From Chlorokybus atmophyticus (taxonomy: Eukaryota > Plantae > Mesostigma and Chlorokybus algae), in assembly GCA_009103225.1 (NCBI GenBank), contig RHPI01001946.1:278420-317122 (forward strand): 38,703 bases of DNA, given 5' to 3'. A program made the translations under genes and the position numbers. The notes below the pieces were generated by a model. The model saw nothing but the letters and a program-made list of their open reading frames with translations. It ran no database searches and was not told the DNA's origin. This document shows, piece after piece, positions 120-38,518 of the stretch; positions within the stretch are counted from its first letter, which is position 1; each line of letters begins with the position of its first letter.

Positions 120-3100
120 ATGTCTGGTCGCTTGGGGTTGTTGTGTCCAGACCCTGCCATTCTAAAACGTCAGTCAAGCAACCTTTGTTGGTAAAAGTAG
201 AACATTTGACAAGCGTGTGGTCCTCTTGTTCACTCGCACGCACGCACGCACGCACGTGTACGCGCACACGCACATTTACACACAGTACACGAACTTACAA
301 AGCAATTGCGCAGTATCGCCACTTGCGCCGTCAACGTACTCGCGCACTCGCACGTGCACGCATACGCGCTCGAACACGTGGTTTTCCCCAGACTCCCCAC
401 CACACACCCAATTTGCTGTATGTTGGCCGCATTACACGTTTGTCCAACAGCGAGTGCTGGACACCCTTTGCTTGCTGTACTCAAACACGTTGCCGATGAC
501 TTTGCTGGCGGCGGCGAGGGAGGCGTGGGTGGCGTGCCCTCGGGTGAAGGTGGGGGAGAGTATGTTGGGGTGGAGTACACGGGTATGGTGAGTGGGGTGC
601 GTGTGAGGGTAGCTTGAGGTGGTGAGGAGATGTAGGAGGAGAGACCCTCTGTGTAGAGGTTCTCTGATAGGACGGTTGTGATAGCGGATTGGAGGTTGGA
701 GTTGATGGTGGAGACAAGCTGAGTGTCCAACGTCACCTGTGTGTGGTTGACGTTGCTAAGAAACGCGTGCGCGTGACATTATGGGTGGATAGATACCCGC
801 ACACAGCTATGCACAACAGTCACGCATGTTATACCTGCAATTCGTGCACACCACATAAGCATACAGACACGGACACACGCATGCACTTGCGCCGCACACA
901 CATGTACGCACGTGCTCGTGCATGTGCATGTCTGCACGCGCACACAAACACGCACACATGATAGTAGGTTGATAGACAACCCTTCATGCAGTACTCACCT
1001 TCACGGCCATCTCGCTTCCATAAGCCGCTTCCAACAGCCTTCTCTTCCCACCATTGTCAGCCCAATACGCATCTTTGATCCCCACCACTTCCACGTCCGT
1101 CCACACCACCGCGACGAACCCCGTCACCGCGTTGAACGTGTCGGCCACGCCCGCCTGGATGATCTGACTCGCGTAGCCGTCGTTCAGCGTGGCAGCGTCG
1201 AGGGAGGACAGGGAGAAGGAGAAGGAGACAATTGATTGATCGGATTGGAGAGATGTGGCTGTGCATTGGGAGAGCTGAGGGACGTAAGCTGAGAGACAAT
1301 CAGAACAGTCGGGCTTGGAGGTTACTGACTGGGTCCTGCGTAGCAGACGTGATGTTATATTGTTGTGGTGGTGGTGGCGGTGGCTGTTGATACTGTTGTT
1401 GTTGTGGTTGTGGTTGTTGTAGTGGTGGTCGCTGCTGTTGTCGTCAATGATGTAGCAAACAGCACGGATGACAACAACAGCCACAACAACAACAGCAATA
1501 ACAATAATAACACGTTCAATGTTGATATTAACTGCTGTTTTACTTGCCAGGACGCACCAAAGACACTGCAAGTTGGTTGCTTACTTGCAGTTGTTGGTGA
1601 AGCACGTGTTGTAGTCTGTGTCCCCATTCCCACAATTGCTAGCCAGGCAGTCCGCGACAATTGCCATAGCATCCGCATCGCACATATCTCCATAATTCGG
1701 CAGGCACGGCTTTATATCCGCAGCATTATCACTGATGCAATGTTGGCACTCGGTGCTGATAATATTATTATTCATAAGTGGCGAGCCGTTATCCGCGAGG
1801 CAATGTGTGTCACTCGCCGCGCATACGCCAAAGTTGTTGCCACCCACGCAGGCGTACACGCAGCGCCCGATGGTGTTCATGTCGTGGCGTGAACACACCT
1901 TGGGTGCGGGTGGCGGGGATGCGTAGACAGGTGGTGGCGAATATGTTGGTCTTAATTGTGGCGCGGAAGGTGATGGTTGTGGTTGTGGTTGTGGTTGTGG
2001 TTGAGGTTGTGGTTGTGGCGGGGCAGGTGGCTCTTGGCGAGGTGGTTGTGGTTGTGGGGAGGCAGGTGGTCCTGCTCCAGGTGTGGGTGGTTTGTTGTTG
2101 GGTGCTGGTGGGCCTGAAGGTTGCGGGCTAGGTTGTGGTGCTCCAGGAGGAGTGTTTGTGCGTGGCGCAGGAGGTGCGGGTGATGCTCCGGGTGGCGAGT
2201 ATGTGCGTGGTGCAGGTGGTCCAGGTGGCTGTGGTCCAGGTTGGCCAGGTGGTCCAGGTTGTCCACTAGGTTGTGGAGCAGGTGGCCCAGGTGGCTTGGC
2301 TGGCCCTGCAGCTGGTGGTGGGCTACCTTGCTGTGGCGGACCAGGTGGTGCTGCACTACAACCAGGGTCACCTGAGGGCCAGATATGAGTGTTACAACTT
2401 GTAGTCATGACCAGCATGCATGCAGATGTGTACCTGGTGTGCAGTCGATACTGCAGTATGGGTCCGTGTCAGGGTCGCAGCAAGTTGGGTCACCAGCTTC
2501 GCACGGCGGATACACCTCGCAGTAGGGGTCTGACTCAGGGTCACAGTCTTCACCTGGAGGAGCCAGCTGAACCGGCGCTGGTGGACCACCTGGTGTTCCA
2601 CCTGGCGGTGTGCCTGGCGGTCTGCCTGGTGGTGTGCCTGGTGTTGCACTTGGCGGCGCGCCACGTGGCGCGCCTGGAGGCCCTCCTGGCTGCCTTGGAG
2701 GTGGAGGTGCTGGCTCATCAACAGGTGGCGTGTTGCCATCAAGGTTGCATTCAGGGTCGTCGTCAGGGTTGCAGCAGCTGGGGTCACCAGGCGCGCAAGA
2801 ATCAGCAGGTGGCGAGCTATCGTTTGGTGGACTAGTATCAGGTGGCGCGCATGAGGGGTCATCCGCCGCACACGGACTGTCACAACTTGGATCATCAGGT
2901 GCGCAGTCACTAGGAGCACTAGGCGGCGAACTGGGGTGGGCACCAGGTGTCCCGGCTGGGGGTGGGCCACCTGGCTGGGCACCTGGTGTACCACCTGGTG
3001 CTCCAGCCGGAGGTGGACGTGGCTGTGCACCTGGTGTTCCACCTGGAGCCCCAGCTGGAGGTGGGCCACCTGGCTGAGCACCTGGTTGGGTTCCACCTGG

Positions 3101-6100
3101 TGCTCCAGCTGGAGGTGGAGGACGTGGCTGTGTACCTGGCGTTCCACCTGGAGCCCCAGCTGGAGGGACACCTGGCTGAGCACCTGGTTGGGTTCCACCT
3201 GGAGCTCCAGCTGGAGGTGGGCCACCTGGCTGTGCACCTGGCTGTTGACCAGGTGTGTCGGTGCCAGGATCGCACGTGTCATCGACGTTGGGGTCACAAG
3301 GCGGCGGCGTGTTATCAACTGGAGTACACTCCGGGTCAACATCAGGATTGCAGTCCTGCAGCAACCGACGCCTGCGCCAGTTGGCATTCACGAAAGACAC
3401 GTATGCCGCCGATTGGACATTGGAAGTGTCGTCACCCGAGTCCTCCAAAACCACGCAACGGTCGTCTTCATCTTGGGCGATGGACATCACGTCGCTGCAG
3501 GCGACGCCAGATAGGGAGTACCCGAAGGTGCCTATGAACACAAAGGTACTCTCAAAGTATGCGTGTGCGCGAGTCAGTGCGTGCCTGCGTGCGTGCTTGC
3601 ATGTGATCACTGTATAGGTGTGTTCATACTTCATGCTGCTATACAGCTGCAGCCTCAATGATTGCTATCAGCGTTTTCAACATGCTTTGGTTGAGTCGTC
3701 GCACAACATGTACACATTGTTGCTGTTGTAACCAACCAACAACATGCACAAGGCCTTACCGAAAAAGAATGGTGCCGTAGACGAGAGTGCCAGTCTCTGA
3801 TACGTCGCGTTCTTAATCTCCTGCCTCACAGCGGTCTGAACAGTGACAACACCGAGGTTGCCGATCGTCACGTTGTACGGCCCCTGTTCAGCAAAGCTGT
3901 GCTTCGTCTCATCGATCATCACAAACACGTCCAGGGACCCGTCCACGAGAGATGATAGCACGTCGCCGCGACCCAAATGAGAACCGCTGATGGCCTCGCC
4001 GGATCTGATAGCAAAAGTGTTGATACGAGTGCGGATACGCATGTTGGTACACAAGCGGCTTGAGAGTGTGTTCAACACACATGCATGCACACTTACTTTC
4101 CACCATCCACGGTGAGTTCTTGACGTCTGCCTGACTTGTTGGCCGCACGAATTACTCGCACCTGCATGCACGTACACATCTAGTTACACGCTATGTTCAA
4201 CTGCATGCACGTGCTCACTCAACAGTCGAGTATCAAACCTTTTCTGCGTTGACGGTGTCGGCATCCAACACAACATAATAGGGGGAGCCGTTGGTGTCCA
4301 TGGTGGGGAAGGGCGTGTAGTTGTCTACGGTGACGTTGATCCGCCACGCACCGAGCTTGTTATCAAAGGGGGCTTCTTCGGTGCGGGGATCGATGTAACC
4401 CTCCGCCTGAAAGTTGCACACGTACACCTGGTCCTTGTTCTTCTGGGCCATCTCATTGTACTACACACATACACATGCACACAAACATGTTAGCGTCTAC
4501 CATCCATAGTAACATATGGAGATGTGCGCACGTGTGCGTGTGTGCGCGCGTGTGCGTGTGTGCACGCGCTTGTGCCCATGCGTATGCGTGTGTGCGTGTG
4601 CGTGTGCGCGTGTGTATATGTGCAAGAGCATGTGCTCTTGTTTACTTACCAGCACATCTCCCGGGCACGGTGTGCAGCTCCCCGACACCGCATTCACCAT
4701 CTGCGTCCCCGCGTACGCGTCCAGCGACCCCACGAACCCTTTCACGGTCGTCTCGCCCGGCAGCAGGAACTGCTCGCAGGGCTCCGACACCGCGATCGAC
4801 GACGCCGTCCAGGGCTTCACCGTGTTCTGGAGGTTCTTGTAAACGAGGGGGTTGGTGCAGTTGCCGCTGCTGGAGCAAACCTGTTGGAGGACACAGTGAG
4901 AAGTGTGGCTTATTGCAGTCTACAAAGTTGGAGCATAACCACAAGGTCAAAGTATGGTGGACATGTTGGTTTCTCGTGTGTGTGTGTGTGTGTGCTCTTG
5001 CGCCCGTGCAAGTCTCATGGTAGCACTCCTCGTTATGGGTGCAGAAAGCATTGTTTGTCGAAGTTGGGACCGTTAATGCACACACACAGCAGTGACCTGG
5101 CCAGAGTAGCAGCCGTAGACTGCGACTCCCGATGCGGCGCAGTCGGGGTCCCACGCCCCGCATCCGCAGTGGCAACCGTCGTTGTCGCGCGACGCCCCCG
5201 AGTTGTACCACGCGGCCTTGCACACCCAACCTGACGGGGGCTCGGTCGAGTACGACTACACACAACCCAACGGTGAGACAACATACACGCTTGAATTTGG
5301 TGATAGAGATGTATTAGACTTACTGTTGCTGTGGAGCCGTCGACAGCAGACTTGAAGTCGATTGGATTCGGCCTCTCGACCTTTATTGCCACCGCATTCA
5401 CAGTGGCATTGATGCCAATCACGTTCACCTGCATTGACACAACATCAACAACATACCCACATGTCACCCTCTAGCAGCACACGTACCCACACCTACATAC
5501 CCGCTCTGTCCCGGCCATGCCGGAAAGAATGAGTTGAAACGGGAAGCATCGGCTATCATCAGGAGCAGTAACAAAGCGCGTGGAGGTGTTGGAGTCAAAT
5601 ATTGGACTTGGCAAGAACATTGTTGCACACATTTGTTGGCGCAATTGTTGGCCAGCTGTATCAGAAAGGATGATTGTCGTGTCGTTGATGCCGGGAGGCT
5701 TGATGAACCACTTGTTGAAGTCGATGGATGTGTATTCCATTGATGTGGACAGTGAACCGGATGAAGAAGAACCAAAGCGTTGACGTGCACACATCGTGGA
5801 CTGAACAGTGTGGTTGAAGTTGTTCACGTAGGTGACGGCCATCTTCCAGTCAAGCATACCAGCATCGCTGTTCGTGAAGTCATCCTGCCACAATGTGTGC
5901 ATCAGTGCGTATTTGTGCGTATCACTCATGCACAGGTTTGCTGCCATAGCACACATCCACCCACACACACACACACACCCAAAACGCATATATATACACA
6001 CGCAGATGCACACGCATGCAAAAGCACGTGCGTGCATGCGTGCGTGCGTGCGTGTGTGCATGTGTACGTGCGTGCGTGTGCGTGTGTATGTGCTGCACCT

Positions 6101-9847: not shown

Positions 9848-12800
9848 ATGCGGCGGGCGGCGCCGCTTTTGGGGACTAGGCTGCGGGCCGCCCACGCAGC
9901 CGCCCGCCGCCGGGCTGGTTTGGCCTCTTCAACTGGGAGCAAAGGATCTCCTCCAACTCCGCCGAAGCAAAACGGTGCTCAAGTACATCAGCCACAGGTG
10001 CCATGCAGAGACCAATGCAATGCATGCTCTGTTATTATTGCAGCATGAGCACATCACGCCGATGGTCCCGTCATGCTGGGAAAAATGCCGGTTGTTAACT
10101 CCATCAATTTCAGCGGTGTAAGCTGTCGGTATTGTATGGGACACATGCAATAACGCTTTCCCAAGGCTGATGCCTTTATCTGTGTTTCATGTTTGTCGAC
10201 AATGCATGGTTATTGACAGACGGTGAAAACTTTTGCAGTTCGTAAGCAGCACCATTGCATTGTGCACAAGCAATGATTTGTGTAATGCTCTTTGCATGTA
10301 TGTCAGCCAAGTCGCCTGTCACTGCGGTCGCATTGGCATGACGTCCCTGACAGACAAACGCACTCATACGAGCCAATGAGTGTGCTGCATCGTGCGTATC
10401 TTCGCCAATGTAGGTGTAGGATAGATGCATCCATGCAGTGCAAGTGTTTGCAAGGCATCATTTTTCCAGCATTACCATTGCCGCCAAAATTTATAGCGTC
10501 CCCACAGTGAGTTTGCTTCACAGGCAAAGCCTAAGGCTTCGGGGCCTGCCGCTGCCCCGACAGCACCAAAACCATCGACATCTGCACCTTCTGCACCACC
10601 GGCAGCTGGACCCATCACGCCGCCACCCCCACCCCCACCTGCATCCTCAAGGCGGTGGTTGTGGACTTCCCTCACAGCAGCAGCAGGGTTGGCGCTTGGT
10701 GTTGGTGCTGTATATGTGGACCCTTCGCGTCTGCCACCTGCGTTGCAACCATGGCAGGAACAACTGCGGCAGCTGCCTGCGAACCTGAAGTCTACCATAG
10801 GCCAAAATGAGGCATCAGACAAGCAGCAACAGCAGCAGCGGCAGCGGCAGCGGCAGCAGCGGCAGGAGCAGCAGCAACAGCAGCGGCAAGAACAGCAGCA
10901 ACAGCAGCGGCAGGAGCAGCAGGAGCAGCAGCAGCAGCAGCATGGGTCGTACATGCGTGAACATCAGGAGCAACCACAGGAACAGCCTGTCACATTGCAG
11001 GACACCAATCTTTCAGGACATGAGGTTGAGCAACTGCAGGCTGCAGCAGTTGAGCAGTTCGCTGATGCGCAGCGTGAGCTGCGGTCGCATTCAGAGACCG
11101 CCAAACATCATGCTGAAGCTGCAGAAACGTTCATTGATGGCCACATCAAGTCACAAAAGTCAGCTGCAGCGGTGCGTTGCGTTCTGTCTTATGGCTTACA
11201 AAGCTGTCCAGTTGTGTCGCATCACGCACATATAGTTAACTAAAGGCAGGGTGGCAGTCGTGCAAGTGGCCAAAAGCTGCAACTCATGTCTGCTCCTAAT
11301 ATGTAGTATTGTGGCAGCTTGAAGTGGAGAGCACAAACACTGGCAACTCAAACTTCGTTAAACTGCAGTCGTCTCCGCACCGGATTGAAAGCATGGAGGA
11401 GGCGGGTACAGACAAGAAGGATACTCGGGAGTCGATGCGGGAAGCGGCGCAAAGCAGAGATGCTAGCCCTGCTGGATCAGGTGAGGTGTAGCAGTGGCAC
11501 GGATGGTTTGGTAACAGGCAACAATTGCCCGCCATGATCATGGTTGTGTCACTGCAGTATAACATTGGTATTTGGTACATGTCACACTCGTTTGTGAGAG
11601 TTTTTGGATCACAAGCATGCGCAATAATGCCGTTTGCATTGATTGGGAAACTACAGGTGTTGCGGAGGCTGCAGCGGCTGTAGCTGCTGCAGCGGCACAG
11701 TCAGCTGCGCAAGACGCCAGCCGTTTGCTTGCTGACATGCGAGCAGAAGCGGAGGCACGCGTGGGCCTTCCAACAACATCTGCGCAACCATCACTGAGCG
11801 AGCAGAGCACTGTAGCTGTGGATGCACTGCTGGAAAACGCTAAACAACAACAGCAAGCCGTGGAGCCCGCTAGTGTTGATGGGGCAGAGGGTGAACGTGC
11901 TGTGTCAGAGGACGTTGGCGCGGTTGAAGAGTGGCGCAGAGCGCAGGGCCTAGTGCTTGTTGAAGCCATCCGAGCCGCGGAGCAGCGGCAAGCACAAGCT
12001 GATGCTATCAAGTTTAATGAGGTTTTGAAGCAACGAGATGATGAGACAGCGCGTGCCCTGCAGGCCGCACATGATGAAGCAGCTCGTCGGGCTCAGCAGG
12101 TACAATCTTAATAAATGCTGTTGTTGTCACGTTGGCTGAGGGTTTTCGTGCGTGTCCACACAGGTCAAGCAGCTTCAGGAGAGGTTGGAGGTCGGCACGA
12201 AGGCAATGAGGTCGGCACTTGAGGAGCAGCGGCGCGCGGCGGAGTTGAGGCTGACACAGGCGCTTGCACACAAGGAACAGGACGCGCAGGCCAAGGTGGA
12301 GGCCGCTATTGCTGACGAGCGTGTCAAGACAGAGGAGGGCCTGCTACAGGAGCGCATGGGGCGCATGAAGGCCATTGATGATCTTCGGATGAAGGTCAGC
12401 CGGTTGTATTGGGATGCATGCCCTGAGGATGTTGAAGATGTACTACATGCAAGATATATGCAAGACATGCAAGATGTGCAAGATGCAAGATGTATGCAAG
12501 ATGTACTACATGCTACACAATGGCCATGTTGTTGTCCTTTGCATCGTTGCAAAGGCAGCACGCACCAAGACTGAGTTGTTAGCTACTAGAATGTTTACTA
12601 CGAACACTCTTATCACTGGCATGGTTTGAGGGTATGTGCCACTAACAATCTCACTTGCCTTTCCAGATCAATGCATTGCAACAAGCATTCAGCCGGAGAT
12701 CAGATGAGGCTCACCAGTCTCACAAGGCTCACATGATCACCATGGGCGCATCGGCCTTGAGCGCAGCGGCTGATGAAGGCCGGCCGTTCAAGGCTGAAGC

Positions 12801-14051: not shown

Positions 14052-17000
14052 TTAATGGTTAGATGCGAAGGTGGATGTAGGCAACGGCGGGCGCGTAAGC
14101 GTTGGCGCCTGAAGCTTGCGCTTGCGTGGCGTGCCGCCCTCATCATCAAACCCGAGCGGATGGCTCGCAAGAGGTCCCTTTGTCGGGGCGTACATCGCCT
14201 CCAACATGGGATCACTCTTGTAAGCGGGTGCCGGCACGTCCTTCACCTTGTTGGCACGACGCCGACGCCGGCAGCAGTACACACCCACAATGGCACCGAT
14301 GATGACAAGTACAAGTAGCAAAGCTCCACCCAAACCAGCCCCGAGGGCAATGCCCAACGCTGAGGACTTCTTGGCGGAAGGGGATGTGGCCCCACTACCA
14401 CCAGCGTTACTGCGTGTGGATGCGGGGAGACATGTGGCGCTACCCGAGTCGCGGTACCAACTTGTAGCACATTCAGAGCAGTCCGTGCCGGTATAACCAC
14501 TATAACAAGCACATGTGCCACTCGCGGCGTGACACACGCCGTGAGCGCTGCACTGCTGACCGTTGGTGTTGGACAGGGGGCACATCACGAGGGAGTACGG
14601 GCAGTCCAATGCACAACATGTGGACACGCCGTCCTCCCCGCACCTCTCACCCATCTCGCACAACCTGTTGCCGCACACGCCCTCCGCCGTCACGTTGGCC
14701 ACCGCGTCAATAGTTGTGTCGGTACCGGCGAGTTGTCCACCCGAAGCCGCAGAGAGAGCCGTGCTGATCTGGTTCAGACCCAACGCACCCGAAGAAGTGG
14801 AAGTACTCGCCTTGTTGGGATTGTATTTGAATGTGATTGTGCCTGTTGTGCCGCTTTGCAACAAACGTCGTCGCCTCCAACCAGCGCTCGTGTACTCGCC
14901 AGAATCAACCGTCTCAATTGTGCTCACGTCCGCACCCAACATGCTCGCCAACCCGTACTCTACCGTCCCATACTGCAGAAGAAAGGTTCCAACATCAGCA
15001 TCACTGATGACCAATCACATTGCAACATGTAGGCCTTCTCCAAACCATTGCACTACACTATGGTGTGTATGTGTGTATGTACAGTGCATCATAGTGCAGA
15101 GCGGCAGAGTCAAGTGTTGTATCGTAGAGTTACAAACATCATGTATGGTACATATGGGTTGTTACATGATGTTGTACACAGCCACCTTATGGTGTGATTG
15201 CGGCAATATGTATGTACCTGGCTTGAAGTGCTTGCGTTGGCGCCATCGTTCTGCACCGTGCTGATATGAAGCACGGCGACCGTGGCGCAGCTCGTCCCGT
15301 CCCCGTCGCACACGCCGCATGTGTCGATGTTGCCGCTCTTGCAGCAGAGGCCGCCGTAGTCGAGGACGTCGCAGCCGGCGCCGGCGGCATCAACGGAGGA
15401 GGAGAGGCCATCGCACACGCCCAACGCATCCAACACACCACTGGATGAGGAGACAACACACACATGAGCACCATTGCAAGCATGATTGAAGAGGGACAGC
15501 ATGACACACGCACGCACGCGCACGCGCACGCACACACTGTGCTTTGTCACCCGTCCTCTCACCTTTCACAGCACATTGCGTCCTTGTCTAAGACTGCCTC
15601 ACCGCCGCTGCAGCACATGCCAACCTTGTCGACGGCCGTCGTGCAGCACCTGGCAGAATACAATGAGAGGGTTGAGTAAAGCTTGCCACAGTATCATGCT
15701 ATGCAGCACTCCGTCCACGTGCATGCTTGAACGTGCATGTATGTGTGTATGTGTAACTCATACCTTCCAAGGATATCGATCGCGTGTCCTTCGCATCCAG
15801 GCGGCAGCTGGCAGTACTTTCCAGTGTACCCATCCCCGCACGCGCACTTTGCGTTGGCACACACGCCATGTCCCGAGCACCCCTCTCCATTACAAAAATC
15901 ACACGGGTCCGTGCCACACTCCATCACTTCAGGTAGTTTCAGCACCCCCTGGCAAGAACCTGACGAGGCTGCGTTGCTGCCATCAGAGGCCTGGCAGGTG
16001 ACCTGACGGGCAGCGAAGCCGCCCCCGCAGGTGCGTGAACAGGGACCCCAGGACCCAACATTCCAACCGTACGTCACGCAGGCACCCTGGTGACAACCAC
16101 GGGACTCCGCTGGCTTGGAGGAGGAGATACACATACCCACATCCACAACACTACTTGTTGTGCTGTCCACGCACTCTACGGTCCGTGTCTGCGTGCCTCC
16201 CCCGCACACTTTGGTACAGTTGCTCCACGCCGTTGTGCGCCAATAATGCTCGGGACACGTCTGCGTGCTACAACTTTTACTCGTCGGGTACGCGTCCAAG
16301 TCGTTGCACTTTGTCGTTGGGTCTGTCGGGTACGCTCCCGTGGTCGCATCAGCACACAAAACGGTGCGGTATTGCGTCCCCCCGTCGCAGGTGGCGTCGC
16401 ACTCGGTCCACGCGGAAGAGTACACGCCGTAGCGAGAACAAGGGATGGAGTTGCACTGTCTATATGCTACAGGAGCAGTTAGAGAAGCGCAGTCTGAGTC
16501 TGATGCAGTTCTTCCGTCGCTGTAGCCGCAAACTACTGTCCGGACCTGAGGGGACATGTGCACACGCATCAGTACCACATGGAGGTTTGTCAAGTGGTGG
16601 TGGTTGAAAGTGCGCGCGGCCATGTCTTGAATGAAGTTGTCAAGCAATAATGGTACGCACGCACGCATGCACACATGCTGCTATGGGTCAGCTTGTAAAG
16701 ACAAGTGTGTGTACAAGTGTGTACATGCGTGCGTGCGCGTGCGCGTGCCTGTGCGCGTGTGCGCGTGTGTGTAAGAGAGTGCGTGTTAGTATGTTTATGT
16801 CTGCCACTCATAGACAAATTGGTTGTCTCACCTGAACACCACTTCCGCACGGTTGCGAGCACGGCGTCCAATCCGACGCGAACCACGCCGCCTGTCCGTC
16901 ACTCAACGCCCTATTATCCCCACTACTCCCACTATCTCCACTCCACCTCTGCGGCGAGCTGCACTCATCGCTACAATGCTTGGGTCCATTCTTCACAAAC

Positions 17001-20000
17001 CCTCCATTATACATATCAAGCGCTAGTTTCGCCAGATACACGGCCGCCAAGTCGTTGAGTCTGAATGAACACTTGGGCAAAGCTTTGGTTGAACACCAAG
17101 TGAGTAATGTGTCTATTGGAGTCTTGTCGCAACCGTTGGCGACATTGATTGAAGAGGTCACGAAGGAACGGCCGAGAGAGTAGAAAGGGTCGCCGGAAGT
17201 GCTGCCGAGGATGTTTTTGTAGGAGACGCCGCAGACGGAAGAGGTGGAGGGGATGGATTTGGGCCAGGAGTTGGACTTGGTTTGCCACCAGTTCTGGAAA
17301 AGAGAAGAGGCGGTGAGGGATGCACACACGTACGGGCACGCATGCATGCATATGCAGTCACACACGCACACGCGCATGCGTGCGCATACACATGCGAGCG
17401 TGTGTCACAGAGACACATACACACACAGAGATACACACGCACGCACGCACGAACGCCAAGTGTAACTTGTTTCTTTGTTTGTTTCAAGACATTGCAATAC
17501 CTGAGTGTATGAGCAGGTGGTTGTTGTTGGAGACGGGGTTGGCGTAGAGCTCACTGTGCAGGCTGTGGAACAAAGCCATCGCACATCAATTAATACTATC
17601 AACTCGCGACACACACAACACAAAGACCACAAAGTCCATCATCTCACACCTGGCAGCGCATCGTTGCCGAGGTTCCAATTCCCCAACAAATTCCCGATTG
17701 TGACGGCGTCATCGTTGTCATCGCTGTCATCATCATCATCTATGCCATCAAGATCACTGATACGACTTTTATACAAACACCTCTTCTCCAACATACTCTT
17801 GGCTTTGCGCGTAGACTTGATAAGATAATCGTGCGTGCACCCGTTGGCAATGTTGAGACTGGCAGAGATGTAATGTTGGGCCAAAAAGGTCCAGGGACTT
17901 TTTCCAGGATCGGATGTGGTGTTCCCGAGGACCTCCACCCAACTCTTCCCGCAAAGGGACTGAGGACCCTTCACGGGCCAGCCTCGGGACCTCCAGTAAG
18001 AGGGGTTCCAGACACAGTCTCCGCAGCAAGTAGGACTTGGGCTGGGAGCAGGACTATTTCCAACATCACCACCGCCAACATTATCATCATCGTGTTCAAA
18101 GTTGCACACATCGTCGATATCATCGTCATCGCCAGTCGTATCATCATCGTTACAGCGTGACACGCCTTTCTTCCCGCGGTTGAAATCACTCAGGGCCGAT
18201 ATGACGTGTAATGCTTGCACCGTGTTGTTGTTCATGAGTTGCTTGTTGCATGACGAGCACGCCCACTTTGCCCATATGATGTTGTCCGCGACATCATCCG
18301 TATCAGCTCCATTATTCACATTCAGCGTGGCGCACGCCAACTCTTTCCCGAGCGATATCGACACATCCGAGGCTTGCGCCGAGGTCCCGAACCAGGTCTG
18401 GTAAGAAGTCCCGCAAAGGGACCAAGAGGAGGATGAACCCTTCCAGGACTTGGGATTCTTCCCCCACCAGGACTTCTTACGCACGCAACCGGAAGGTGTT
18501 TGTGTGCCTTTGCAACCGGTAATGCCACACACGCCGGAGACTGAGACGGTGCCACGCACGGTGGAAGGAGAGGTTTGGTCCAACTCGATGGTGGCGACGC
18601 CGGTCGTGTACTTGCCGGGCAACTCAAGACTGTACTCGACAGTCATCTGTGCAGGCATATAGAGTGAGATTGTGCGTGTGTGGGTGTGGGTGTGGGTGTG
18701 GGTGTGCGCGTGCATGCGCAGGCAAGCGTCTATGTTGGTGTGTGCATGCATGCGTGCGCGTGTGTAAGTGTATTTGTTAGTGCGTGCAAGCACCAACATG
18801 CATGCATGCATATAGGTGGGCACGCACATACATGAGTATGCAAGAATGTCAGATTGCCAAAATGTGACTACAATATTTGTAGTGCAGGTTTGAGTGTGTA
18901 TTGAAACCTGTGTTGAGTCGCTGAAGCCAAAGTCCCACAGAAACATCCTTTTCCCATTCACCGTCACGATCTCCGCGGTTCTTCCCGTCCCTTGCGGTCC
19001 CCACGCAATAGTATCAATCGTTCCCGCCACGCACGTTGGCAACTGCACTCTGAACCCCGACACTTGTGACGAAGACCCACTCAACCTCTTCAACGTCCAC
19101 GTGAAGCGTGTGACGTTGGACTTGACATCGTAGCGAGAGCACTTCTTGTTGAAGGTGACCCAGAGACCGTTGGCTTTGGGAGCGTCCCATTGGGGACTGC
19201 ATGTTGTGTCGGAGGGGGGGGAGGAGGNGTTAACATCTGGACGGCCATCGTTGCCTGAGGGTTGTGCCGGTCTGTGTTTTTGGACATGAATGGTGAGGCC
19301 GGTGGATTGGTAGCAGAAATGGCTGATGTAATCACGGAAACGGCTTGGGTATCTGGAGGGGGGAGGGGGGGGAGGAGGGGGAGGGGGAACATCATCGGCG
19401 CACTGGGGAGGGCCACGCTTGCCCCCGCACCAATCATCGAGGTCCTGCAGGTGCATCGCACTGTCACTTTCACTCTCACTCTCACTCTCTTACACGCATA
19501 CGCACACGCACACGCACACGCACACGCATACCAATGGGCGTACACGCGCACGCGCACGCACGCACACACGCATACCTTGATGGCATTCTTGATCTTTGCC
19601 CTGTCATCGTCATCAGCATCATAGCCATTCTTGTTGCTGTAACCGCTATAACTCTTGCTGTTGACTTTGCACTTCTTCAGAGCCACTTGCGCTACAGCAA
19701 AAGCCTTTGCCACAGCTTTGTTGTCACAACCAGTATTCTTATTCAGATACGCCGATACATAACTCCTCTGCAGATGTGCAATAAGTTTGTTGTCGTCATC
19801 ATCATCATTGGTGTTGTCGTAGTCGTTGTCATCGTTGGCAGCATCCGACCACTTCTTGCCACAACATTTCCAGTCTTTTCCCCCACTCGGCCACTTGTTG
19901 GTGTACTTGCGCCAGTAATTGCGCGAGCGCACGCACGGCGTGGTGGATGTTGTTGGTGTTGGCGCAGGTGCAGGTGAGGGTGAGAGACCCTCGCCTGGAC

Positions 20001-23000
20001 ACAATTTGTTGTTGTTGTACGGCTTCACGGCATTGTTGAACGCCTCGAGGACGGCTGATACAGCAGTAGCTTGAGTTGTGTTCGTGCAGCCGCACGTGGC
20101 GAGTGTGGACTCGGCCCACGCGAGTGCATCAGCTACGGGTGATGTGTTCACGCCGTTGAGACCGTTTAACACGGCGCTGATATACTGCCTCGCAAGATTG
20201 ATAACCACAGGGTTCTTTGTCTTCGGCGTCTTCTTCATGATGTACCACCACGACTTGCCGCATAACCTCTTACCACCATACTGCCCATTCGTTGGCCAGT
20301 TGAGACAATCCGCCCAATACCCGGGCGTGTGCACGCATATGTTGGGTGGAGGGGGTGGAGGTCCACTCGCCGGGGGCGGGTAACAAATTTCAGGTCCACA
20401 TATAGAAGGAGCAGATACAATATTCCCAGAAGGCTCCACAATCTGCATGGCAACAGGTCCCAACCTCAATGCAACAGGGACCTCCACGGTGTAGTTGACC
20501 ATCAATGTGGCGTCATCGGGGAACAAGAAGGCGAACTCGAGGAATTGTGTGCCAGCTACGTTGACGAGGTTCACACTGTTGCCGCCAGTGTTGGGGCCCC
20601 AGTTTAGGTCACCGGGACGGGTACCGAAACAGCAAGGGACCTCAATGCGGAAGGACCCACGCCCCACCTGATGTACATAGATACAAATCAGTAGTTACTT
20701 GGTGAACTAGTATAGAGACAATAGACACGAGTAATAGACAAAGACCAAGAAAAGTAACCAGCATTATTTGAAGTGGACTCTCAGACCTCTAAAGATGTAC
20801 CCATTGTCATTTCAATATTACCTGAGTTGGGAACAGTGGCTGTCGCTTGACGAGGTAGGATATGAGTGTCTTTCGCGTGGCTGTGTTGTAGCTCCTATCC
20901 ATATTCACCCAATATCCAGTGTTGCCATCATCGAAGTGCGGGTTGCAATCGGCGTCGGGTACAACTACTGGTGGTGCAGACACAGAGGCAATACCACATA
21001 TGCTCGGGGCCTGGATGATGTTGTTGTTTGGTTGCACTATCTGCATTGCCACGGGACCCGTGGCGAAATCGTTGGCAACCTCAACAAAATATTGCACCAT
21101 CATCTGCGTGTTGTTGTCGAAGCCGAAGGTGAACTCGAAGAAGTACACGCCGTTGATTGTTGTGATGGATGCGGCTTTGGTCTGACCCGCAGGTCCCCAG
21201 ATTAGGTCCGCATTGGTTAGGGCTGTTGGGACCTGAACCCGAAACTTTCCCACCTGAGCATTGGCAATCTGACCCTGCCTTTTCACCTGCCAGGTGAAGC
21301 GCGTGCGGCCGTTCAACGTGGGTGAAGGCGAGTACCAAAAGTCCACCCAGTAGCCCTGCACGCCCGCGTCGAATGTTGGGTTGCAGTCGTCTCCACACGG
21401 GGGCGGGTAGTACGTTGGTGGAGGTGGAGGAGGTGCAGGGAGTGTGTAACATTGCGCGGGTCCACATACTGTCACCAATACAACATTGCCATTTGCATCG
21501 ACCACGTGGGCCGTTACGGGAGCGAGCTGAACCCCGCCGGGGAGAGCCAACGTGTACGCGTTGCTGGAGAACTGCCATTCCAGATACAATACCCCGTTGA
21601 TTGTGACGATATCCGCGTCCACAACGCTGCCGTCACGCGGACCCCACGCCAACAAGTCCGCGTTGTTGCCGAAGCAACACGGGACCGCTATACGGAAGGC
21701 CGAGAAGGGTGATGCGCGTGAGACAGAGTATGTGAGGATTGTAGCGCTGTCTGTTGTATCCACCACACGTGTCATGTCCACGCGCACGTCGCTGGACACG
21801 CCGTTGCTCGAGCATGACAGATCTGCAGGTGGAAGCGATGTTGTTGCCGGCGCGGGTGATATTGACATCAGGCCGCAGATGGATGGAGCTGATATCGTCG
21901 CCACGTTGTTGGGTGGGTCGAGTTGCATCGCAACGGGACCCGTAACAAACCCGCCGCCAGCTTTAAGTTGAAGAGAGTATTGCACCATCATCTGTGTGTC
22001 GGAGTCAAAGCCAGCAGTCCACTCAAAGAACACCACATTGTTTATAGTGGTGATGCGGGCGGTTTTACCCGCACCACTTGGGCCCCACGCCAGCGTGTTG
22101 GGGTCCACGTTGGCGTAGTTGCTCGGCAAACCCACCCTAAACTTCAGCACTTGTGCGTTGGCCACCTGACCCTGGCGCTTGACTTGCCAGATGAAGATAG
22201 TGTTGCCGTTGGCGTCGGGCGCAGGAGCGTACCAAAAGTCCACCCAATAGCCTTTGTCCCCTGCGTCGAATGTTGGGTTGCAGTCACTACCGCAAGGAGG
22301 CGGGTAGCTTGGTGGCGGGGGAGGCGGGAGCGGGTAACACGCCACGGGTCCACATATTGACCCGACCCGGATGAGTTGAGCCCCCAGAGGACTAATGATC
22401 TGAGCTTGAACAGGTGCAATCTGGATCCCCGTTGGCACGCTAAGCGTGTACGTCACCATCGCCACATCAGAAGTAGCGAACCCGAAGCTCCACTCAAAGT
22501 AACGCACACCACTTTCAGTGACGAGCCGAGCGGTGTTCCCGCTGTCACGTGGACCCCACTCGACCAGGTCCGTGCGGGACCCGAGACAACACGGCAACGC
22601 TACTCTGAAAGCGGCACCCGCCCCAACTTGTGCGTCCACCATAGGCTGTCTCTTCACTGTGTAGGAGAGGAGAGTGCGGCCTAAGTTGATGTCAACTGAC
22701 TTCGACATCGAGAGCCAGTAACCGCCGCCTTGATCGGTTGTATAGTCAAAGTTGGGGTTGCACTGCTGATCTGCACACACACAACGGAAGCAAGTCAGTG
22801 ACAGCTTTCATCACTATCAACGAGCAAGCAATCGTTGTATCCTACTCTCATCATATCACTTTTATCCCCCTCAACACGTAAACAAATGCGTGACACACGC
22901 ACGCATGCAGATGCACGAACACACAGGCTTGCATGCACGCACACATGTATGCACAGGGTGGGCAAGAATGCTATGCTAATTGATATCAGCCGCAGCAGCG

Positions 23001-25046
23001 CCAGCAAGTGAGTGGGCAATCACACAAGTATACACAACATTTACCAGCGGGTGCTTGTGGTGGGAGGCCGATGGCTGTGATTCCACAGATGCTTGGCACG
23101 GGAACAGTGTTGGCTGTGTTCGAGCCCTGCAACGGGATGTTGATGCTTGCAGCTACGGGTCCAATGCTGAACGCGCCGGGAAGAGTGAGCGTGTACGTCA
23201 CCATAATCTGCGTGTTGGTGTCAAAGGCAAAGTTCCACACAAAGAAGGTCTTGCCATCTATCTTTGATATCTGCGCGGTGTGGCCGGTGCCAGTGGGTCC
23301 CCACTGTATGGCACTGATATCGGTGTCCCAGACCACGTTGTTATCGGGTAGCTGGACTTGAAATCCTGTCGAGGGTGCGTTGGATATTGCCCCCTGGCGC
23401 TTGAGGTTGTACACAAAGGTGGTCGTGCCGCGGATATCAGGGTAGTAGCTGAAATCCAGCCAGAAGCCCTGTGTTCCCGCATCAAAGTTGGCATTGCATC
23501 CGTCGCACGGGTCCGTCGATATCACCGGGGCACCTGTCCCACAACCAGCGATGCCGCAGAGACCTGAGGCCCTAACGACAGCACCGGTAGCTGCACCCAA
23601 ATCGACCTCGGCCGCGACGGGACCCGTGTAGAACACTTGTAAAGGAGCCACATAAGGCCCAACATCGGCCGCGACAGGGAGCTGCAGGGAGTAGACTACA
23701 GTCAGAGTGTTGACGTCGGTGTAATCGGAGTCCCACTGGAAGAAGCGCACGCCGTTGAGTTGGGTTATCTGTGCGGGTCCAGGCGGGGAGTACGCTATAG
23801 CTGATACGGGACCAGCGATGCAGTCGGGCAAAGGGACACGGAAAGCCGATATCGCCTGCGCACCTGAGGACCGAGTCACCGTCCACGAGAACAATGCCGC
23901 TGTCCCGCCAGCAGCCGAACCCCGCGTGAAGGACACCTTCATCCCCGTACCGACGTCCGTGTACGCTGCAGTGCAACCCGCATCTGACACAGACAATCAA
24001 CTCAACTTCATCAGCCCCATGCAAGTTATTGATGTAGCGATCGAGTTTGAAAATATGGTTGCAAGGTTTCAACTGAATGCTAGATGTTGAGGACTGCCTC
24101 AATAATTGCTCCATCCTGTATTGAGTATGCAATTGACTCAGAAAGCGACTAAGGCGAATGTATCAACCTTCCAAAGACCTACTGATGGACTCAACCAGCT
24201 TCTGAACAAATAAAGGGACCATACGAATGATCAACCGATCCATTACTTTAGGCACTGACATGATGAGTACTGGAGTTCAGAAAGTGGTATCAACACGTGC
24301 ATGATCGATCAACAGTGTACCTTGCAGCAGTGCTCTTCCTCCTACGTGCACTCCCCTCCCCTCGTCTTCTCTCACCACAGGTATCTCCTCCGGCACGTCG
24401 ACGGGGAACTCCGCGTCGAAGGTGGTGTAGACCGCGTCGATGGGGATGCCGGCCAGCAGCTGCGGGGGGCCCTGCAGAGGGACGGAGGAGGCGAGGGAGG
24501 TGAAGAGGGCGAGGAAGAGGAGGAAGGAGGACGAGAGCCAGGAAGAAACACCTGTGGATGTAAAGGCGAGGGACTTGTGTGAGTGTGGGTGGGTGAGTGC
24601 ATATATGCGATGGGTGTGCGTTGCAACAACCACTGTGGCGGCTGGTTTCAACTTGACACGCAGTGTGTGTGAGCGCGTTGTGAGGTTGAGTGTGTGTGGT
24701 CGTGATGTATAGATACACGCAGCCGAAGGCCATTGCATGGACTTGCGTGTGTGCGTGCGTGCATACACACATGCACACGCGTGCACATACACATACGAGC
24801 TTGCCGGGTATTGATGCAATGTGCACAGGTGTATCGCAGCAGCAAAACAATGGTGAACAACCACATCGAACGCTGCAGGGCGTTGTCGAACAGCAATCAG
24901 ACAACATATGACGTGTGCTCGCAGGTTTGGTGCTCTGATCTGCGTTACAGATCAGCGATGAGCGATCTAAGCGGGGGATGGTGATTGATTGTGCACTTAC
25001 TCTGAGATCTGGGCCGCCTTGAGGGGCGGCCCCTGGAGGTAGCCAT
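14052..25046 (-). CDS. Gene C: giant modular type I membrane adhesion/receptor-like protein with TSP1 and EGF domains (~2775 aa)
   Basis: 13 exons, all phases consistent: 25046-25001, 24551-24321, 23983-23045, 22770-20822, 20667-19576, 19444-18908, 18646-17650, 17562-17501, 17293-16832, 16545-15764, 15649-15563, 15440-15218, 14972-14052 (8328 nt). Signal peptide MATSRGRPSRRPRSQSVSSWLSSSFLLFLALFTSLASS; 4 ADAMTS-type TSP1 repeats (W..W..CS..CG.G.Q.R.V.C); EGF repeats (CSGHGVC...C.C..GYTG..C); TM LGIALGAGLGGALLLVLVIIGAIVGVY followed by CCRRRRR; 72-aa tail. The count includes 43 codons from a suspect insert at 19228-19356. Confidence 0.88.
15890..16885 (-). other. Four thrombospondin type-1 repeats within gene C
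   Basis: WFASDWTPCSQPCGSGVQVRTVVC, YSSAWTECDATCDGGTQYRTVLC, WRTTAWSNCTKVCGGGTQTRTVEC, WNVGSWGPCSRTCGGGFAARQVTC. Confidence 0.9.
19229..19356 (+). repeat. 128-bp exact direct duplicate of 25290-25417, inserted between poly-G runs next to an N
   Basis: The sequence gttaacatctgg...gggtatctgg is identical at both positions; the only N in the window is at 19228. Confidence 0.9.
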
Positions 25047-30896: not shown

Positions 30897-30898
30897 GG

Positions 30899-32089: not shown

Positions 32090-33528
32090 TTACGATCCGG
32101 TTTGGAAGACCACGCAGCGGCGCGCCTGAGGGAAGTTGGCGTTGCTGTCTCCAGGGTTGAGGTTCAGCGAGCCGATCTGGACAGAAGTCAGCGGCAGCAG
32201 AATGCACTGATTGACAAAGTTCTGAACTGGTGCCTGGCTCTGCATGTAAGGACAGAGTCAGTGCATGTGCGACAGTGCTATGGATTCAGACAGAGGACGT
32301 ACTGGATGCACACAACAATACCTGGAAGACGCGCGCCTCGACTCTGTTGCTGGGCTCTATCGTAAACTGCGATGAAGGGGAGCCTGCTGTACTGGAAGAC
32401 GTGCATACGCATCAGTACAACTAACACCAAACACACCGGTCCAGTCCCAGTGCTGTTCTAAGGCAGCAAACACTGGCGTACAGTGTAATGTTTGTGAGAC
32501 TCCCGCTGATAAAGAAGAACCCTGCGCTGGCGTTAGCGGTCGTGACGGTTTGATTGGCTCCAGTCTTGACATCACTGCCGGAACAATAGTCACAATGAAC
32601 CACCAGCCAACAGCTAACGTAACCAGTGCATGTGTATGTTGTACATGTATGTTATCTGTGTCTGCTTACAAGAACTGGACTGGCCCGTCAAGTGGAGTGT
32701 CTCGCGAAGCTCCCGTCCTCAGGTCGAACACCGGTACCGCGGTAAAGCTTTGGGAGGTAACGAAGTCGCACAGCGTTGTCGCTTGCAGCCCCGATGGACA
32801 CCCTGACTGACACATGAAGTCAAGCACACTCATCATGCAACATTTGCAACCCGTAAACACAGCTAACACAGCATGGTTTCTCACTGGCGCAGGCGCAGTT
32901 GATGGTGCAGATGGTGGTGCAGGCGCAGATGTGGGTGCACCTGCCAGAGAAACCAAGACAGCACAACAATTCTGTGTACATGTACCAACATGCATTCCTT
33001 TCCGAGGACACAGCAAGTGGAGTACCTGGGGTGATGGGCTGCTGCTGCTGGTTGACGTTTACCTGGAGCACGCAAATAATGTTGGAGCCGAAGCACTGCA
33101 CGAGCGTGCCGCCGGGCAGGTTGTTGAAGTTGATCTCGTCGACTTGCACAACATTTGACTGCGAGACGGAGCTGCCCCCACCAGCATTGACATTTATTTG
33201 CGTGATCACCGCAACGTTGGATGCGCAAAGCGCCTTGTTCTGGAGCGCGCTGGCGAGGTTCAACACTTGCACCACCGACACAGTGTTGGACTGGCTGACA
33301 GTAACCTGGCCGCAGGGCGAACATGCCTGCAAGCACGCAGCAGCAAAATCAACTTGAGGCCTGAGTACACATACACATGCCGACGACAACATGGGAGAAA
33401 GAGAGTCATACCTGCAGGATGCGGCGGCTGATACCAAAGAAAGGCTCCGCATCTACAGAGGCAGCGCTGACCAGCAGGAGCAAGGACAAGATGGCCGCAG
33501 CTGCGGCGGGAGATGAACGCATCATCAT
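32090..33528 (-). CDS. Gene F: secreted protein (signal peptide, RRIL site, Q/N/V-rich domain, AP/SP linker, Cys-containing C-domain), ~307 aa
   Basis: Exons 33528-33412, 33326-33026, 32940-32885, 32806-32670, 32574-32474, 32383-32322, 32239-32090 (924 nt, phases consistent). N-terminus MMMRSSPAAAAAILSLLLLVSAASVDAEPFFGISRRILQ; stop after ...RRCVVFQTGS. Confidence 0.8.
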
Positions 33529-34154
33529 GATGCTAGCTCGCACGTGCACCTACTGGAAAACCCCTAATGCAGGGCAATCTGTCTGGCTCACGAATCAAGT
33601 AGGGCCTAGCACGCAGCCTGCCTCGGTAGATGTGTTTGGCCTGGTCTTGCTTGCTTGAGTGCTTCTCAACACAATGCACCAGACTTACTTGGCTTGTTGT
33701 GGTGCCAAAAGCTCAAAACGCCAAAGCTCCCGAAACGCGTGCTAGGCGTGTAGCTGTGACAGTTGTCCTGACACACAACACACCACCTGACAAGCTGTCA
33801 GCTAACACATCAGTAAGCGCACAACTACACTGCTGATCCTCCTTTCAAGCTCTTGTCGTGACCTGCACGAGGTCAGCACACGAGTCGCAACTTGCGACCA
33901 GACCATTTCCTCAGGTGACAACCACAATTCAACACATCAGAGCTGTCAGGGAGTGAACCTCCCCGTAGTTCAACGGGGGTGAGAGAACCAAGTCACGCGA
34001 AGTGAACACACAGTAAACATACAAGCGCATAATGGGAGCACAAATGCTTACTGTCAGCTCTAAGCAGCAAAGGCACACAACAGCCAACCGTACGCAGGGG
34101 CATATGAGGGTACAACATATCAATGTCAGGCAATCAACACGTGTTAGCTATCTT

Positions 34155-35432
<1,278 letters not shown>

Positions 35433-35619
35433 GCTCCCCTTTCACGTCCACGTCCACGCCGCTGCCGCCGCCGCCTCTGTCACCGTATGCTCCGCCGCCG
35501 CCGCCGCCACAGCACAGACAACGTGGCAAGCTGACGTGTGACACTTTTCCTCAGAGTGCTGATCTCGAATAAGATAAATTTCAGCATGCGGCGACTTTTT
35601 TCAGATCCGAGCGGAGTTT

Positions 35620-35740
35620 TCAGCCCCTAAATCGATGCATGCGGTAAGCCTGCCAAGGGTGTGTGAGGCAAAAAGCGATGGACCTCTCTGACACCTAAAC
35701 CTAAACCCAAAGCTAACCCTTACCTAAGCAAGCCCTAAAC
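35620..35740. promoter_or_regulatory. Degenerate telo-box-like motifs in the ~330-bp bidirectional WCRKC/GRXS16 promoter
   Basis: CCCCTAAAT, CCTAAACCTAAACCC (35694-35708), CTAACCCT and AGCCCTAAAC (35731-35740). Confidence 0.5.
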
Positions 35741-35765
35741 GTGATCTGCGGCGACGTTGGCAAGC

Positions 35766-37339
35766 ATGGTGGCGATGGCGGCGGCGGCGGCGGCGGCGGC
35801 ATTCTCGGTGTCGGTGTGCTCCACTTCGGCTGCAGCGTCGTCCAATCTTGCGACCAGGGCTAGCTCAAAGCGGCAAGGCAGGCCCGGCCGCGGAGCAGCC
35901 TTCCCTGCATTGCCAGCAGCGAGGGTAGGCGGCGGTGCTGTGGGCGGGAGTGTGAGTGTCAAGGGTGGGAGTAGCAGGGGCGGGCTGACGCGTAGGGCTC
36001 AGGCTGTTGTGGATCAGGGAGGTGTTGAAGAGCCTGCCGCCTCTGTTCCGAGGCTGTCTGAGGCCCCGAGCGTGCCCGCGAAGGCGGCGGAGATCCCCGC
36101 GGCCCCCGGCGTCTACGCCGTGTACGACCAAGCCGGAACGCTGCAGTATGTTGGACTGTCACGAAAAATCCAGGCCAGCGTTCAGGCAAGCGCGAGCAAA
36201 GAAACTCGCACTAGACATACTCCGTGCTTGCAGCGACTTGTTTGACGCTTCATCTCTCGACGATGTTGGTGTTGTGCTGCGTGTGGACAAAGAGACTGTG
36301 ACAACAGTAGTGTTTCAGGTAGTTGGTTCAATGCATGTTGCAGTCGCAAGCATATGTCCGATCGCAATGGTTGGTGGGCATGGTGTTGGATGGGTTGGTC
36401 GCAGTAAGTAAGTATGTCCTTACAGTGAACAAGGTGGATAGTCCTCGGTTGCTGCATGTGGCAATGGCGGCATTGAAGTGCATATTTTTGCTATTTGTGT
36501 ACCTCATGCCTTGTTGACTGTGTAGTATACCTTGCCGCATTTTGAAGTTGTTGATCAGTAGATAACAATAGCGGTGTTGTGCTGAGGATGCGTGATTGTA
36601 GGCACATGTAGAGGACCTCCCTGAGCTCACGGACACCATACGCTTTGCCACTGTCGGAGCCAGCGCCACGCGAGCCGACTTGCAAGGCGCCTGGCAGGCA
36701 TGGGTGCAGGAGCATTGTAAGCAGAAGCACAGCTGCAGCAAAGATGAATGTCATAAACAACAAGGCTGAACATAACATGGCGCTCTTTGTGTGGGCTTCC
36801 AGTGACAGAGACGGGAACAGTGCCTCCAGGCAACGCTGGCGGCAATACAACATGGACGCAGAGGCGAGCGCGCATGTCGAGGCCGGAAATTCGCATCCTG
36901 CCCGGCAGCCATGTCAGCTTGACTGTTCCGGTTGAGACCATCATCGACAAGATGGTGAAGGAGGTCAAGGTGCTTGCGTTCATTAAAGGCACACGAACGG
37001 CTCCCCAGTGCGGGTTCTCCCACCGTGTGATGCAGATCCTCACTGAGTCCAAGGTTGACTTTGACACGGTACGGCTCCTTTGCTATGCTTTGTTATGCCG
37101 CTTAGTTGTCCACGTAGACAGCTATTGTTGTGATGGCCCGTTGATGGTGTGTGTGTGTCCAGATCAATGTTTTGGATGAAGAGCACAACCCGGGCCTGCG
37201 CGAGGCCATCAAAACGTATTCCAAGTGGCCCACGATACCTCAGCTCTATGCGCATGGCGAGTTCATTGGTGGTGCTGACATTGTTGAAGAGATGTACCAG
37301 AGTGGAGAGCTCAAACAGGCGTTGTCAAAGCAGGGCTGA
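35766..37339 (+). CDS. GRXS16: Plastid monothiol glutaredoxin GRXS16 (N-terminal GIY-YIG-like domain + CGFS Grx), ~325 aa
   Basis: Exons 35766-36185, 36602-36716, 36803-37068, 37163-37339; first intron is GC-AG. Motifs GVYAVYD...LQYVGLSR, VPPGN, AFIKGTRTAPQCGFS, WPTIPQLY..GEFIGGADI. Confidence 0.93.
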
Positions 37340-38007
37340 GGTCTTGACGTACTGCTCGCAACAGCATGTGACCGCGACCATCCTCATGGTGTAAATCAAT
37401 GGTTGCACGACAATGCAGCGCATTCATCATGTCTTTCATACCACCCGTTGTGTCGCACAACTTGTGCATCGCAACGTTGTCATGGAAGGGTTATGGCTAT
37501 CATTGGTTCCTAAAGAGTGAGTGAGGATTGTCAATTGATCATGCTGATATATCCTGGTGTAACATCGTCGTGTGCGTTATTGCTTGCTACTGTTGACAAG
37601 CACCACGCAAGGAGTGCACACTGATGGCGGCCAGGCGCAGCACGTGTCACACTCATCTGTGATGGCAACTAGTACCATCTTCGCAATTGCAAGGTGTCAG
37701 AAACATGTGCTGTTAAAAACCACCTACTGTTAACCGTGTACAAACAGCGCCAGTAACAACATAGACACGTGCTTCACATGCACAGTATGAACCCAGCATA
37801 AGCTCACACGCTCATGAGCTAACTCCTGGATAGGTTGCCTGGCATTGGACTCTAAGGTTATATGCATGCCCGCCCTCACGGTTTGTGGGTGACTTGTGAT
37901 TGCCTTTGCTGCGGAAACCCAAGCAGTACAGTACCTCTGCCACTCCTGTTCCCGTCATGTGTGTTGTTGTGTTGCATCCACATCTGTTCTTCTGAGCTTC
38001 GGCACAT

Positions 38008-38518
38008 TCTCCCTGACAGATCCGATGTGTTGGAGATGTGGCTGTCACTTGATGTCACCTGAGGCAATGGTCTGGTCGCACGTTGCGACTTTGCAACGGC
38101 GCTATCGTGTGCTGATTTCGTGCAGGTCACGACAAGCGCTTGACAGAAGCATCAGCAGTATGGTTGATGTGTGGATTGACTGCTTGTCAAATGGTGATGC
38201 ACACATTGTTGCAGCTTTGGCGTTTGGAGCTTTTGGCACCGCAACAAGTCGAGTAAGTCTGGCGTACTTCTTGAGAGCACTCAAACAAGCAAGATCAGGC
38301 CATGCAATCCTGCCCCAGCAGGCTGACTGGTAGGACCTATTGAGGTTGTGGGCAGACAGGTTGCCCACACTCTCAAGAGGATGCACGTGCAAGCGAGCAT
38401 TACGATGATGCATTCATCCACCACAGCCCCCGCCACTGCGGTCTTATCCTTGCTGCTGCTGCTCAGCGCTGCCTCTGTCAATGCTGAGCCAACCTTCAGC
38501 ACCCGCCGCATCCTGGGG
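38008..38518 (+). repeat. Diverged inverted duplicate of 33412-33955 (upstream region plus exon 1)
   Basis: Shared blocks read by eye: ctccctgacag, gtcacctgagg.aatggtctggtcgca, tcgtgcaggtcacgacaag, gcttt(t)ggcacc.caacaag, agtaagtctgg, gcactcaa.caagcaaga.caggcc, gcacgtgc. Confidence 0.85.
38405..38518 (+). CDS. Gene G: first coding exon of a gene F paralogue (3' partial)
   Basis: MMHSSTTAPATAVLSLLLLLSAASVNAEPTFSTRRILG then a GTAAGC donor. It aligns with gene F exon 1, with the same phase-0 intron after the RRIL motif. Confidence 0.8.

Follow-up and report, generated by a model that had tools for sequence, protein, structure and literature searches.

Four neighbouring genes of the early-diverging streptophyte alga Chlorokybus atmophyticus encode proteins with the short motif Arg-Arg-[Leu/Ile]-Leu (RR[LI]L), and the occurrence of this motif is real and non-random. 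The genes, here called A, C, F, and G, lie in a window of 38,703 nucleotides (GenBank assembly GCA_009103225.1, contig RHPI01001946.1, positions 278,420 to 317,122 of the forward strand), an intron-rich eukaryotic stretch with 54% G+C. Processing by a protease of the site-1 protease (S1P) type is the best-fitting reading of the motif. Five strict sites may be recognition sites of such a secretory-pathway subtilase (also SKI-1 or SBT6.1/SBT7), a proposal made tentatively, at somewhat less than an even chance. With the encoded proteins, a known processing system would gain a set of new candidate substrates. S1P is conserved across eukaryotes, and its plant substrates, which include RALFs, type I pectin methylesterases, GLV peptides, and bZIP17/28, have been described from land plants. 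For streptophyte algae, we found no account of S1P substrates in the literature.

All six motif peptides that a preliminary description of this DNA had assigned to the four genes translate as claimed (Table 1). Five of them contain the strict motif, as RRLL in three sites and RRIL in two; the sixth, C2, reads RALL and has only the loose form R-x-[LI]-L. Coding frames were judged by the G+C content of third codon positions (GC3), and splicing evidence comes from RNA-like contigs of two runs from the same organism. GC3 is 0.75-0.79 in the frames of A1, A2, and the exon 2 pieces of gene C, which favours coding, and the frames around A1 and A2 are open, with good splice sites. Gln or Glu directly follows the motif in five of the six sites and, if exposed by a cut, could become pyroglutamate. 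At exon ends the Gln is expected in any case, because the CAG/GT splice donor encodes it.

The strict motif is far more frequent than residue composition predicts, with three occurrences in genes A and C together against about 0.05 expected. Outside the cytosolic tail, the confident lumenal coding sequence of the four genes (about 4,300 residues) has six Arg-Arg runs. Five of them continue with [LI]L, which a given Arg-Arg would do by chance with a probability of only about 0.006. The sole run that lacks it is ARRCVV, near the C-terminus of the annotated protein P0006 (see below). Coding sequence contains RR[LI]L at about 13 times the rate of the window's other reading frames, and six occurrences in about 70,000 non-coding codons match the rate predicted from composition. 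The loose pattern R-x-[LI]-L is present at chance level (about 0.9 expected in gene C alone), so the RALL of C2, which the preliminary description had counted as evidence, carries no weight.

Arg-Arg runs are also what a basic-residue protease would require. Convertase-like subtilases are known from green algae, as are many secreted proteins with suitable sites (PMC6313938), and either a furin/kexin-like convertase or one of the bacterial-type subtilases reported from the Chlorokybus genome might cut after RR or RRRR, with [LI]L being incidental or secondary. The RRRR of A1 and C1 fits both R-X-[KR]-R and RXRR, A2 (KRR), F, and G (RR) are dibasic only, and C2 does not fit. Moreover, few other Arg-Arg runs occur in these ectodomains, as avoidance of dibasic sites would predict. 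However, a cut directly after the basic residues leaves unexplained why [LI]L follows five of six Arg-Arg runs, and furin-type enzymes do not favour aliphatic residues just past the cut. Cleavage by a basic-residue protease is considered improbable.

S1P specificity would account for all four motif positions. In the strict sites Arg occupies P4 and Leu P1, with a basic residue (P3) and an aliphatic one (P2) between them, in exact agreement with the S1P consensus (R/K)-X-(hydrophobic)-(L/T/K/F). Every site of known topology is lumenal or extracellular, as C1 lies upstream of a membrane helix and RRRRR, and the F and G sites follow signal peptides. The plant precedents cited in the preliminary description also hold. 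RALF23 is cut at INRRIL/ATRRY by AtS1P/SBT6.1, with the consensus RxxL/RxLx (PMC13082318), and RRLL and RKLL are cleavage motifs in type I pectin methylesterases (PMC4008260). Both RRIL and RRLL have been assigned to S1P by experiment and are textbook sites of this protease. Animal S1P cuts viral glycoproteins at RRLL.

A candidate enzyme is present. Subtilases of the large SBT1-5 families are reported only from Coleochaetophyceae and Zygnematophyceae onward and as absent from early streptophyte algae, and the SKI-1-like clade is found throughout Archaeplastida (PMC6713707). The supplement to that study lists Chlorokybus Chrsp66S07212 as Peptidases_S8_SKI-1_like and gives its junction between prodomain and catalytic domain (…SARRKLMGAASSITSMF…), which contains RRKL; the same junction has RRLL in Marchantia and Spirotaenia, RKLL in Physcomitrella, and RHLL in Selaginella and Arabidopsis (PMC6713707 supplement). 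The junction of Chrsp66S07212 itself suggests that the enzyme has the usual S1P specificity.

From the motifs and their settings we infer that cleavage happens, that S1P performs it, and what it would achieve. S1P would act in the Golgi on the proteins of all four genes. From F and G, it would remove the 11-residue propeptide that is left once the signal peptide is gone. In the gene C protein, it would split the giant TSP1/EGF ectodomain from a stub that runs from the Ser/Thr-rich linker through the Cys-rich/EGF part and the membrane helix to the tail. In the gene A protein, it would part a globular portion from the proline-rich stalk modules.

Genes F and G place the motif shortly after a signal peptide of classic type. 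Exon 1 of gene F encodes MMMRSSPAAAAAILSLLLLVSAASVDA, the 11 residues EPFFGISRRIL, and Gln, with gtatga next. RNA-like contigs of both runs join 33412 to 33326, so that this exon ends right after RRILQ; two more introns and one intron in the 5' untranslated region (UTR) are also seen in the contigs. Exon 1 of gene G encodes MMHSSTTAPATAVLSLLLLLSAASVNA, EPTFSTRRIL, and Gly. F and G are recent paralogs, because their 5' UTR and exon 1 are clearly alike. They have a common 5' UTR intron with the same donor context (33563-33700 (-), ..AAGTAAGTCTGG; 38230-38260 (+), ..GAGTAAGTCTGG), which in F is backed by a loose contig end at 33563.

The proposed location of N-terminal motifs at exon ends in three genes is borne out to different degrees. 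RNA contigs establish it for F, for G it is read from the DNA, where gtaagc comes next, and for C2 it is a prediction. The further suggestion that the leader is a shuffleable exon cassette does not survive, as it rests only on the F/G pair, and the leader of gene C has no sequence relationship to theirs and spans two predicted exons.

Among 5.8 billion proteins, mature F has a single relative, Chlat1/8812 (P0006), with 67% identity, which is probably the product of gene G. The Chlat1/8812 model lacks the signal-peptide exon present in the window (38381-38518 (+)) and would therefore be misread as non-secreted. Both mature F (33026-33326 (-)) and P0006 consist in part of imperfect repeats of about 21 residues (SQSN.V.VVQV..., SNVAVITQINVN...). 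These recall beta-solenoid repeats of the curlin type, and DUF4813 gives a match below threshold.

Gene C has an internal site, C1. The annotated protein P0001 (EukProt Chlorokybus atmophyticus, jgi/Chlat1/8807, Chrsp90S08122; 893 residues) is 100% identical to the part of gene C that was searched and agrees with the splice read from the DNA (…STSSQ/YGTVEY…). From the N-terminal side, it has TSP1 repeats, C1 (residues 619-626), a linker rich in Ser and Thr, a Cys-rich/EGF part, and a membrane helix with RRRRR behind it, and it ends in a tail of 72 residues. This predicted topology shows a type I membrane protein with C1 in the ectodomain, about 170 residues outside the membrane. Since C1 is outside the membrane helix, a cut there would free a large ectodomain. 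To this extent the earlier suggestion that internal sites release ectodomains from transmembrane anchors is upheld, for the topology of gene C.

The N-terminal end of gene C is predicted from the DNA. At C2, a gtacac donor stands one base after CAA, and an in-frame acceptor is predicted at 23983. The CT-rich stretch that would encode the hydrophobic core can also be read as a polypyrimidine tract, and GC3 favours coding. Of gene C, the model Chlat1/8807 (window 14055-17800 (-)) includes no more than the C-terminal 893 residues, beginning at an internal Met. Because the long upstream exons at 17642-23996 are outside this model, the annotation of gene C is probably split or truncated.

Conservation is seen between A1 and C1. 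The 8-mer WRRRRLLQ is identical in both, although 8 of the 24 bases differ, all synonymously, and likeness in the remainder of the module is only about 30%. Synonymous divergence together with perfect residue identity argues for selection on these residues, and the 8-mer thus bears a signature of constraint at the protein level. The preliminary description correctly reported the identity, yet the contexts of A1 and C1 are not otherwise unrelated, as the likeness extends upstream of the 8-mer (GT..Y.L…DSG..TS…WRRRRLLQ). With the 8-mer left out, the alignment has z=4.1, a value reached by 0.2% of shuffles. Each module begins beside an intron. A clean shuffled exon was considered as the origin of the A1/C1 module and rejected, since the introns are one codon apart and in different phases.

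A conserved 8-mer need not be a cleavage site. It could be the conserved core of a homologous A1/C1 module, kept as a structural element of a small, beta-rich, possibly Calx-beta-like fold, or as a basic patch for binding to acidic polymers of the wall, with the F/G motif being unrelated. An ungapped alignment of 77 residues with 30% identity relates the C1 module (P0001:612-688) to Calx-beta repeats of P0002, a bacterial-type protein of 3020 residues, and RRRLLQ falls on a strand region of these repeats. However, the scores per repeat are only 3-17 bits, the module has no match to Pfam Calx-beta (PF03160) even at E=10, and four consecutive Arg residues would be unusual for the core of a strand. 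A structural role also leaves unexplained the RR[LI]L of A2 and of the F/G propeptide, which occur in unrelated contexts. We regard it as unlikely. Separately, the apparent strand-loop-strand setting raised the candidate of a self-cleaving juxtamembrane domain of the SEA/GAIN type, which was dropped; the model at pLDDT 33 shows no readable alpha/beta fold, a G/S[VI]VV or HL/T-type autoproteolytic motif is absent, and neither Pfam nor solved structures gave a match.

Database searches return little beyond the proteins themselves. Word searches found no relatives with the C1 module and, with residues 586-640 of P0001 at E up to 10, the query alone. HMMER against 1.84 billion representatives, with part of gene C, returned its own protein and four repeat proteins that lack the motif. 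ESM Atlas look-alike scores of at most 0.78 are uninformative, and searches of Pfam and of solved structures with the modules gave no matches. In the literature, RRLLQ leads only to unrelated papers on the EGFR juxtamembrane region.

Several observations weigh against processing by S1P. None of the searches above found orthologs with the motif-bearing modules, or further paralogs. If C1 is on a strand, as the weak alignment with Calx-beta repeats suggests, it would be a poor protease target; AlphaFold2 without an alignment gives pLDDT 33, at which exposure of the site is unreadable. A lumenal position was read for three of the sites, C1, F, and G. RNA contigs, which cover F, include none over exon 1 of G, and expression of G was not seen. 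The motif was defined post hoc. Finally, the independent events number three, because F and G, as recent paralogs, count once, and so, probably, do A1 and C1 with their homologous module.

This low number is an argument for chance combined with shared ancestry, by which one duplication of the A/C module, the F/G pair, and a fortuitous hit at A2 would account for the sites, the loose pattern having been chosen afterwards and the Gln supplied by the CAG/GT splice consensus. The chance-level count of R-x-[LI]-L and the six additional RR[LI]L in non-coding frames of the window are in keeping with such an origin. Nevertheless, three hits among four independent Arg-Arg runs have a binomial probability of about 7e-7, uncorrected for the post hoc choice of motif, and the probability stays small even with a generous correction. 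The synonymous divergence of the fully conserved 8-mer likewise argues for selection. Chance with shared ancestry is given the same low probability as cleavage by a basic-residue protease.

The proposed processing by S1P resembles several known systems, and differs from each. Substrates of S1P/SBT6.1 in land plants (RALF23, type I pectin methylesterase, GLV/CLEL6, and bZIP17/28) have the same four-residue motif in a lumenal position at the boundary between pro-region and mature protein, and the enzyme clade is present in Chlorokybus too. The putative substrates described here, which come from an early-diverging alga, are unrelated to those of land plants: TSP1/EGF giants that resemble adhesion receptors, a mosaic similar to extensins, and a small secreted protein specific to its lineage. 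Animal surface glycoproteins processed by S1P or furin, and the arenavirus GPC with its RRLL, are type I proteins that cleavage splits in two at RRLL or RRRR, at a point of the ectodomain some way off the membrane helix; there is no homology. The S1 cleavage of Notch, by which a type I protein is split at a basic site in its ectodomain, is a similar comparison for gene C. Compared with the apicomplexan PEXEL/TEXEL motifs (RxLxE/Q/D, RRLxx), four of the six sites fit RxLx[EQ] as well, and these are downstream of a signal peptide. In contrast, F and G have Ile at the third position, and the apicomplexan motifs are cut, for export to the host cell, by an aspartic protease from a distant lineage.

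In diatoms, silaffins, cingulins, and silicanin-1 share an RXL domain, in which behind the signal peptide comes a short pro-segment that ends in RRL/RXL and is removed by proteolysis (PMC5525289). F and G have an RXL-like layout with a segment of 11 residues, and the N-terminus of gene C possibly has one with 53 residues and a loose motif. This is a resemblance only, because the diatom proteins are unrelated in sequence, belong to the stramenopile lineage, and are tied to biosilica, and the protease is not known there.

Table 1. Positions of the motif sites and of the gene parts that contain them, in window coordinates
Feature	Position	Strand	Description
Site A1, WRRRRLLQD	3356-3379	-	End of globular part of gene A, directly before Cys/Pro-rich stalk; GC3 0.75
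Site A2, KRRLLE	1029-1046	-	Near end of a gene A exon, donor gtgagt at 998; GC3 0.79
Site C1, WRRRRLLQS	14856-14879	-	Last exon of gene C, in P0001
Site C2, GRALLQ	24322-24336	-	Predicted end of gene C exon 2; loose, weak motif
Site F, SRRILQ	33412-33426	-	End of gene F exon 1
Site G, TRRILG	38504-38518	+	End of gene G exon 1
A1 module	3353..3532	-	60 amino acids, starts at predicted acceptor; weak homology to C1 module
Gene C, last coding exon	14055..14972	-	C1 module, Cys-rich/EGF part (14469-14582), membrane helix (14271-14366), RRRRR stop-transfer, cytosolic tail
Gene C, predicted exon 1	25001-25046	-	Would give MATSRGRPSRRPRSQ
Gene C, predicted exon 2	24321..24551	-	Signal-peptide hydrophobic core, acidic pro-region of 53 amino acids, RALLQ
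Gene F, exon 1 coding part	33412..33528	-	Signal peptide (MMMRSS...SVDA), propeptide, then Gln
Gene F, intron 1	33327..33411	-	85 nt, GT..AG, removed in RNA-like contigs of two runs
Gene F, exon 2	33026..33326	-	Start of mature protein (ACSPCGQVTVSQSN...)
Gene G, exon 1 coding part	38405..38518	+	Signal peptide, propeptide, then Gly

The window holds further genes and features. Between the inverted paralogs F and G, two expressed genes for redox proteins of chloroplast type are divergently transcribed about 320 bp apart. One encodes a thioredoxin-like protein with a WCRKC motif (34019-35486 (-)), and the other encodes a CGFS glutaredoxin (35808-37557 (+)) that has an N-terminal GIY-YIG-like segment and resembles GRXS16. 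Genes for mitofilin and for a GATA factor are also present, and an extra RRIL (TRRILG, 11415-11426 (+)) lies in a short open frame within the mitofilin gene region. The left edge of the window is a run of 69 G (1-69), which may be an assembly artefact, and at the right edge intron 1 of gene G starts with a long CT-rich microsatellite (38525-38703).

A wider evolutionary proposal, which is doubtful at present although somewhat less so than a structural role of the motif, is that S1P already matured extracellular matrix and adhesion proteins at the base of the plant lineage. By a code of RR[LI]L followed by Gln or Glu, it would have stripped short N-terminal propeptides and split or shed giant, animal-like TSP1/EGF receptors (compare Notch and dystroglycan), and the processing of pectin methylesterases and RALFs in land plants would be a later re-use. 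As it stands, processing by S1P in Chlorokybus is a motif-level hypothesis with decent statistics, both reasonable and testable. If true, Chlorokybus would offer a simple system with one candidate enzyme and few clear substrates. It would open the questions of what S1P did before the peptide signalling of land plants, and of whether giant adhesion-type receptors of algae mature by cleavage as animal ones do.

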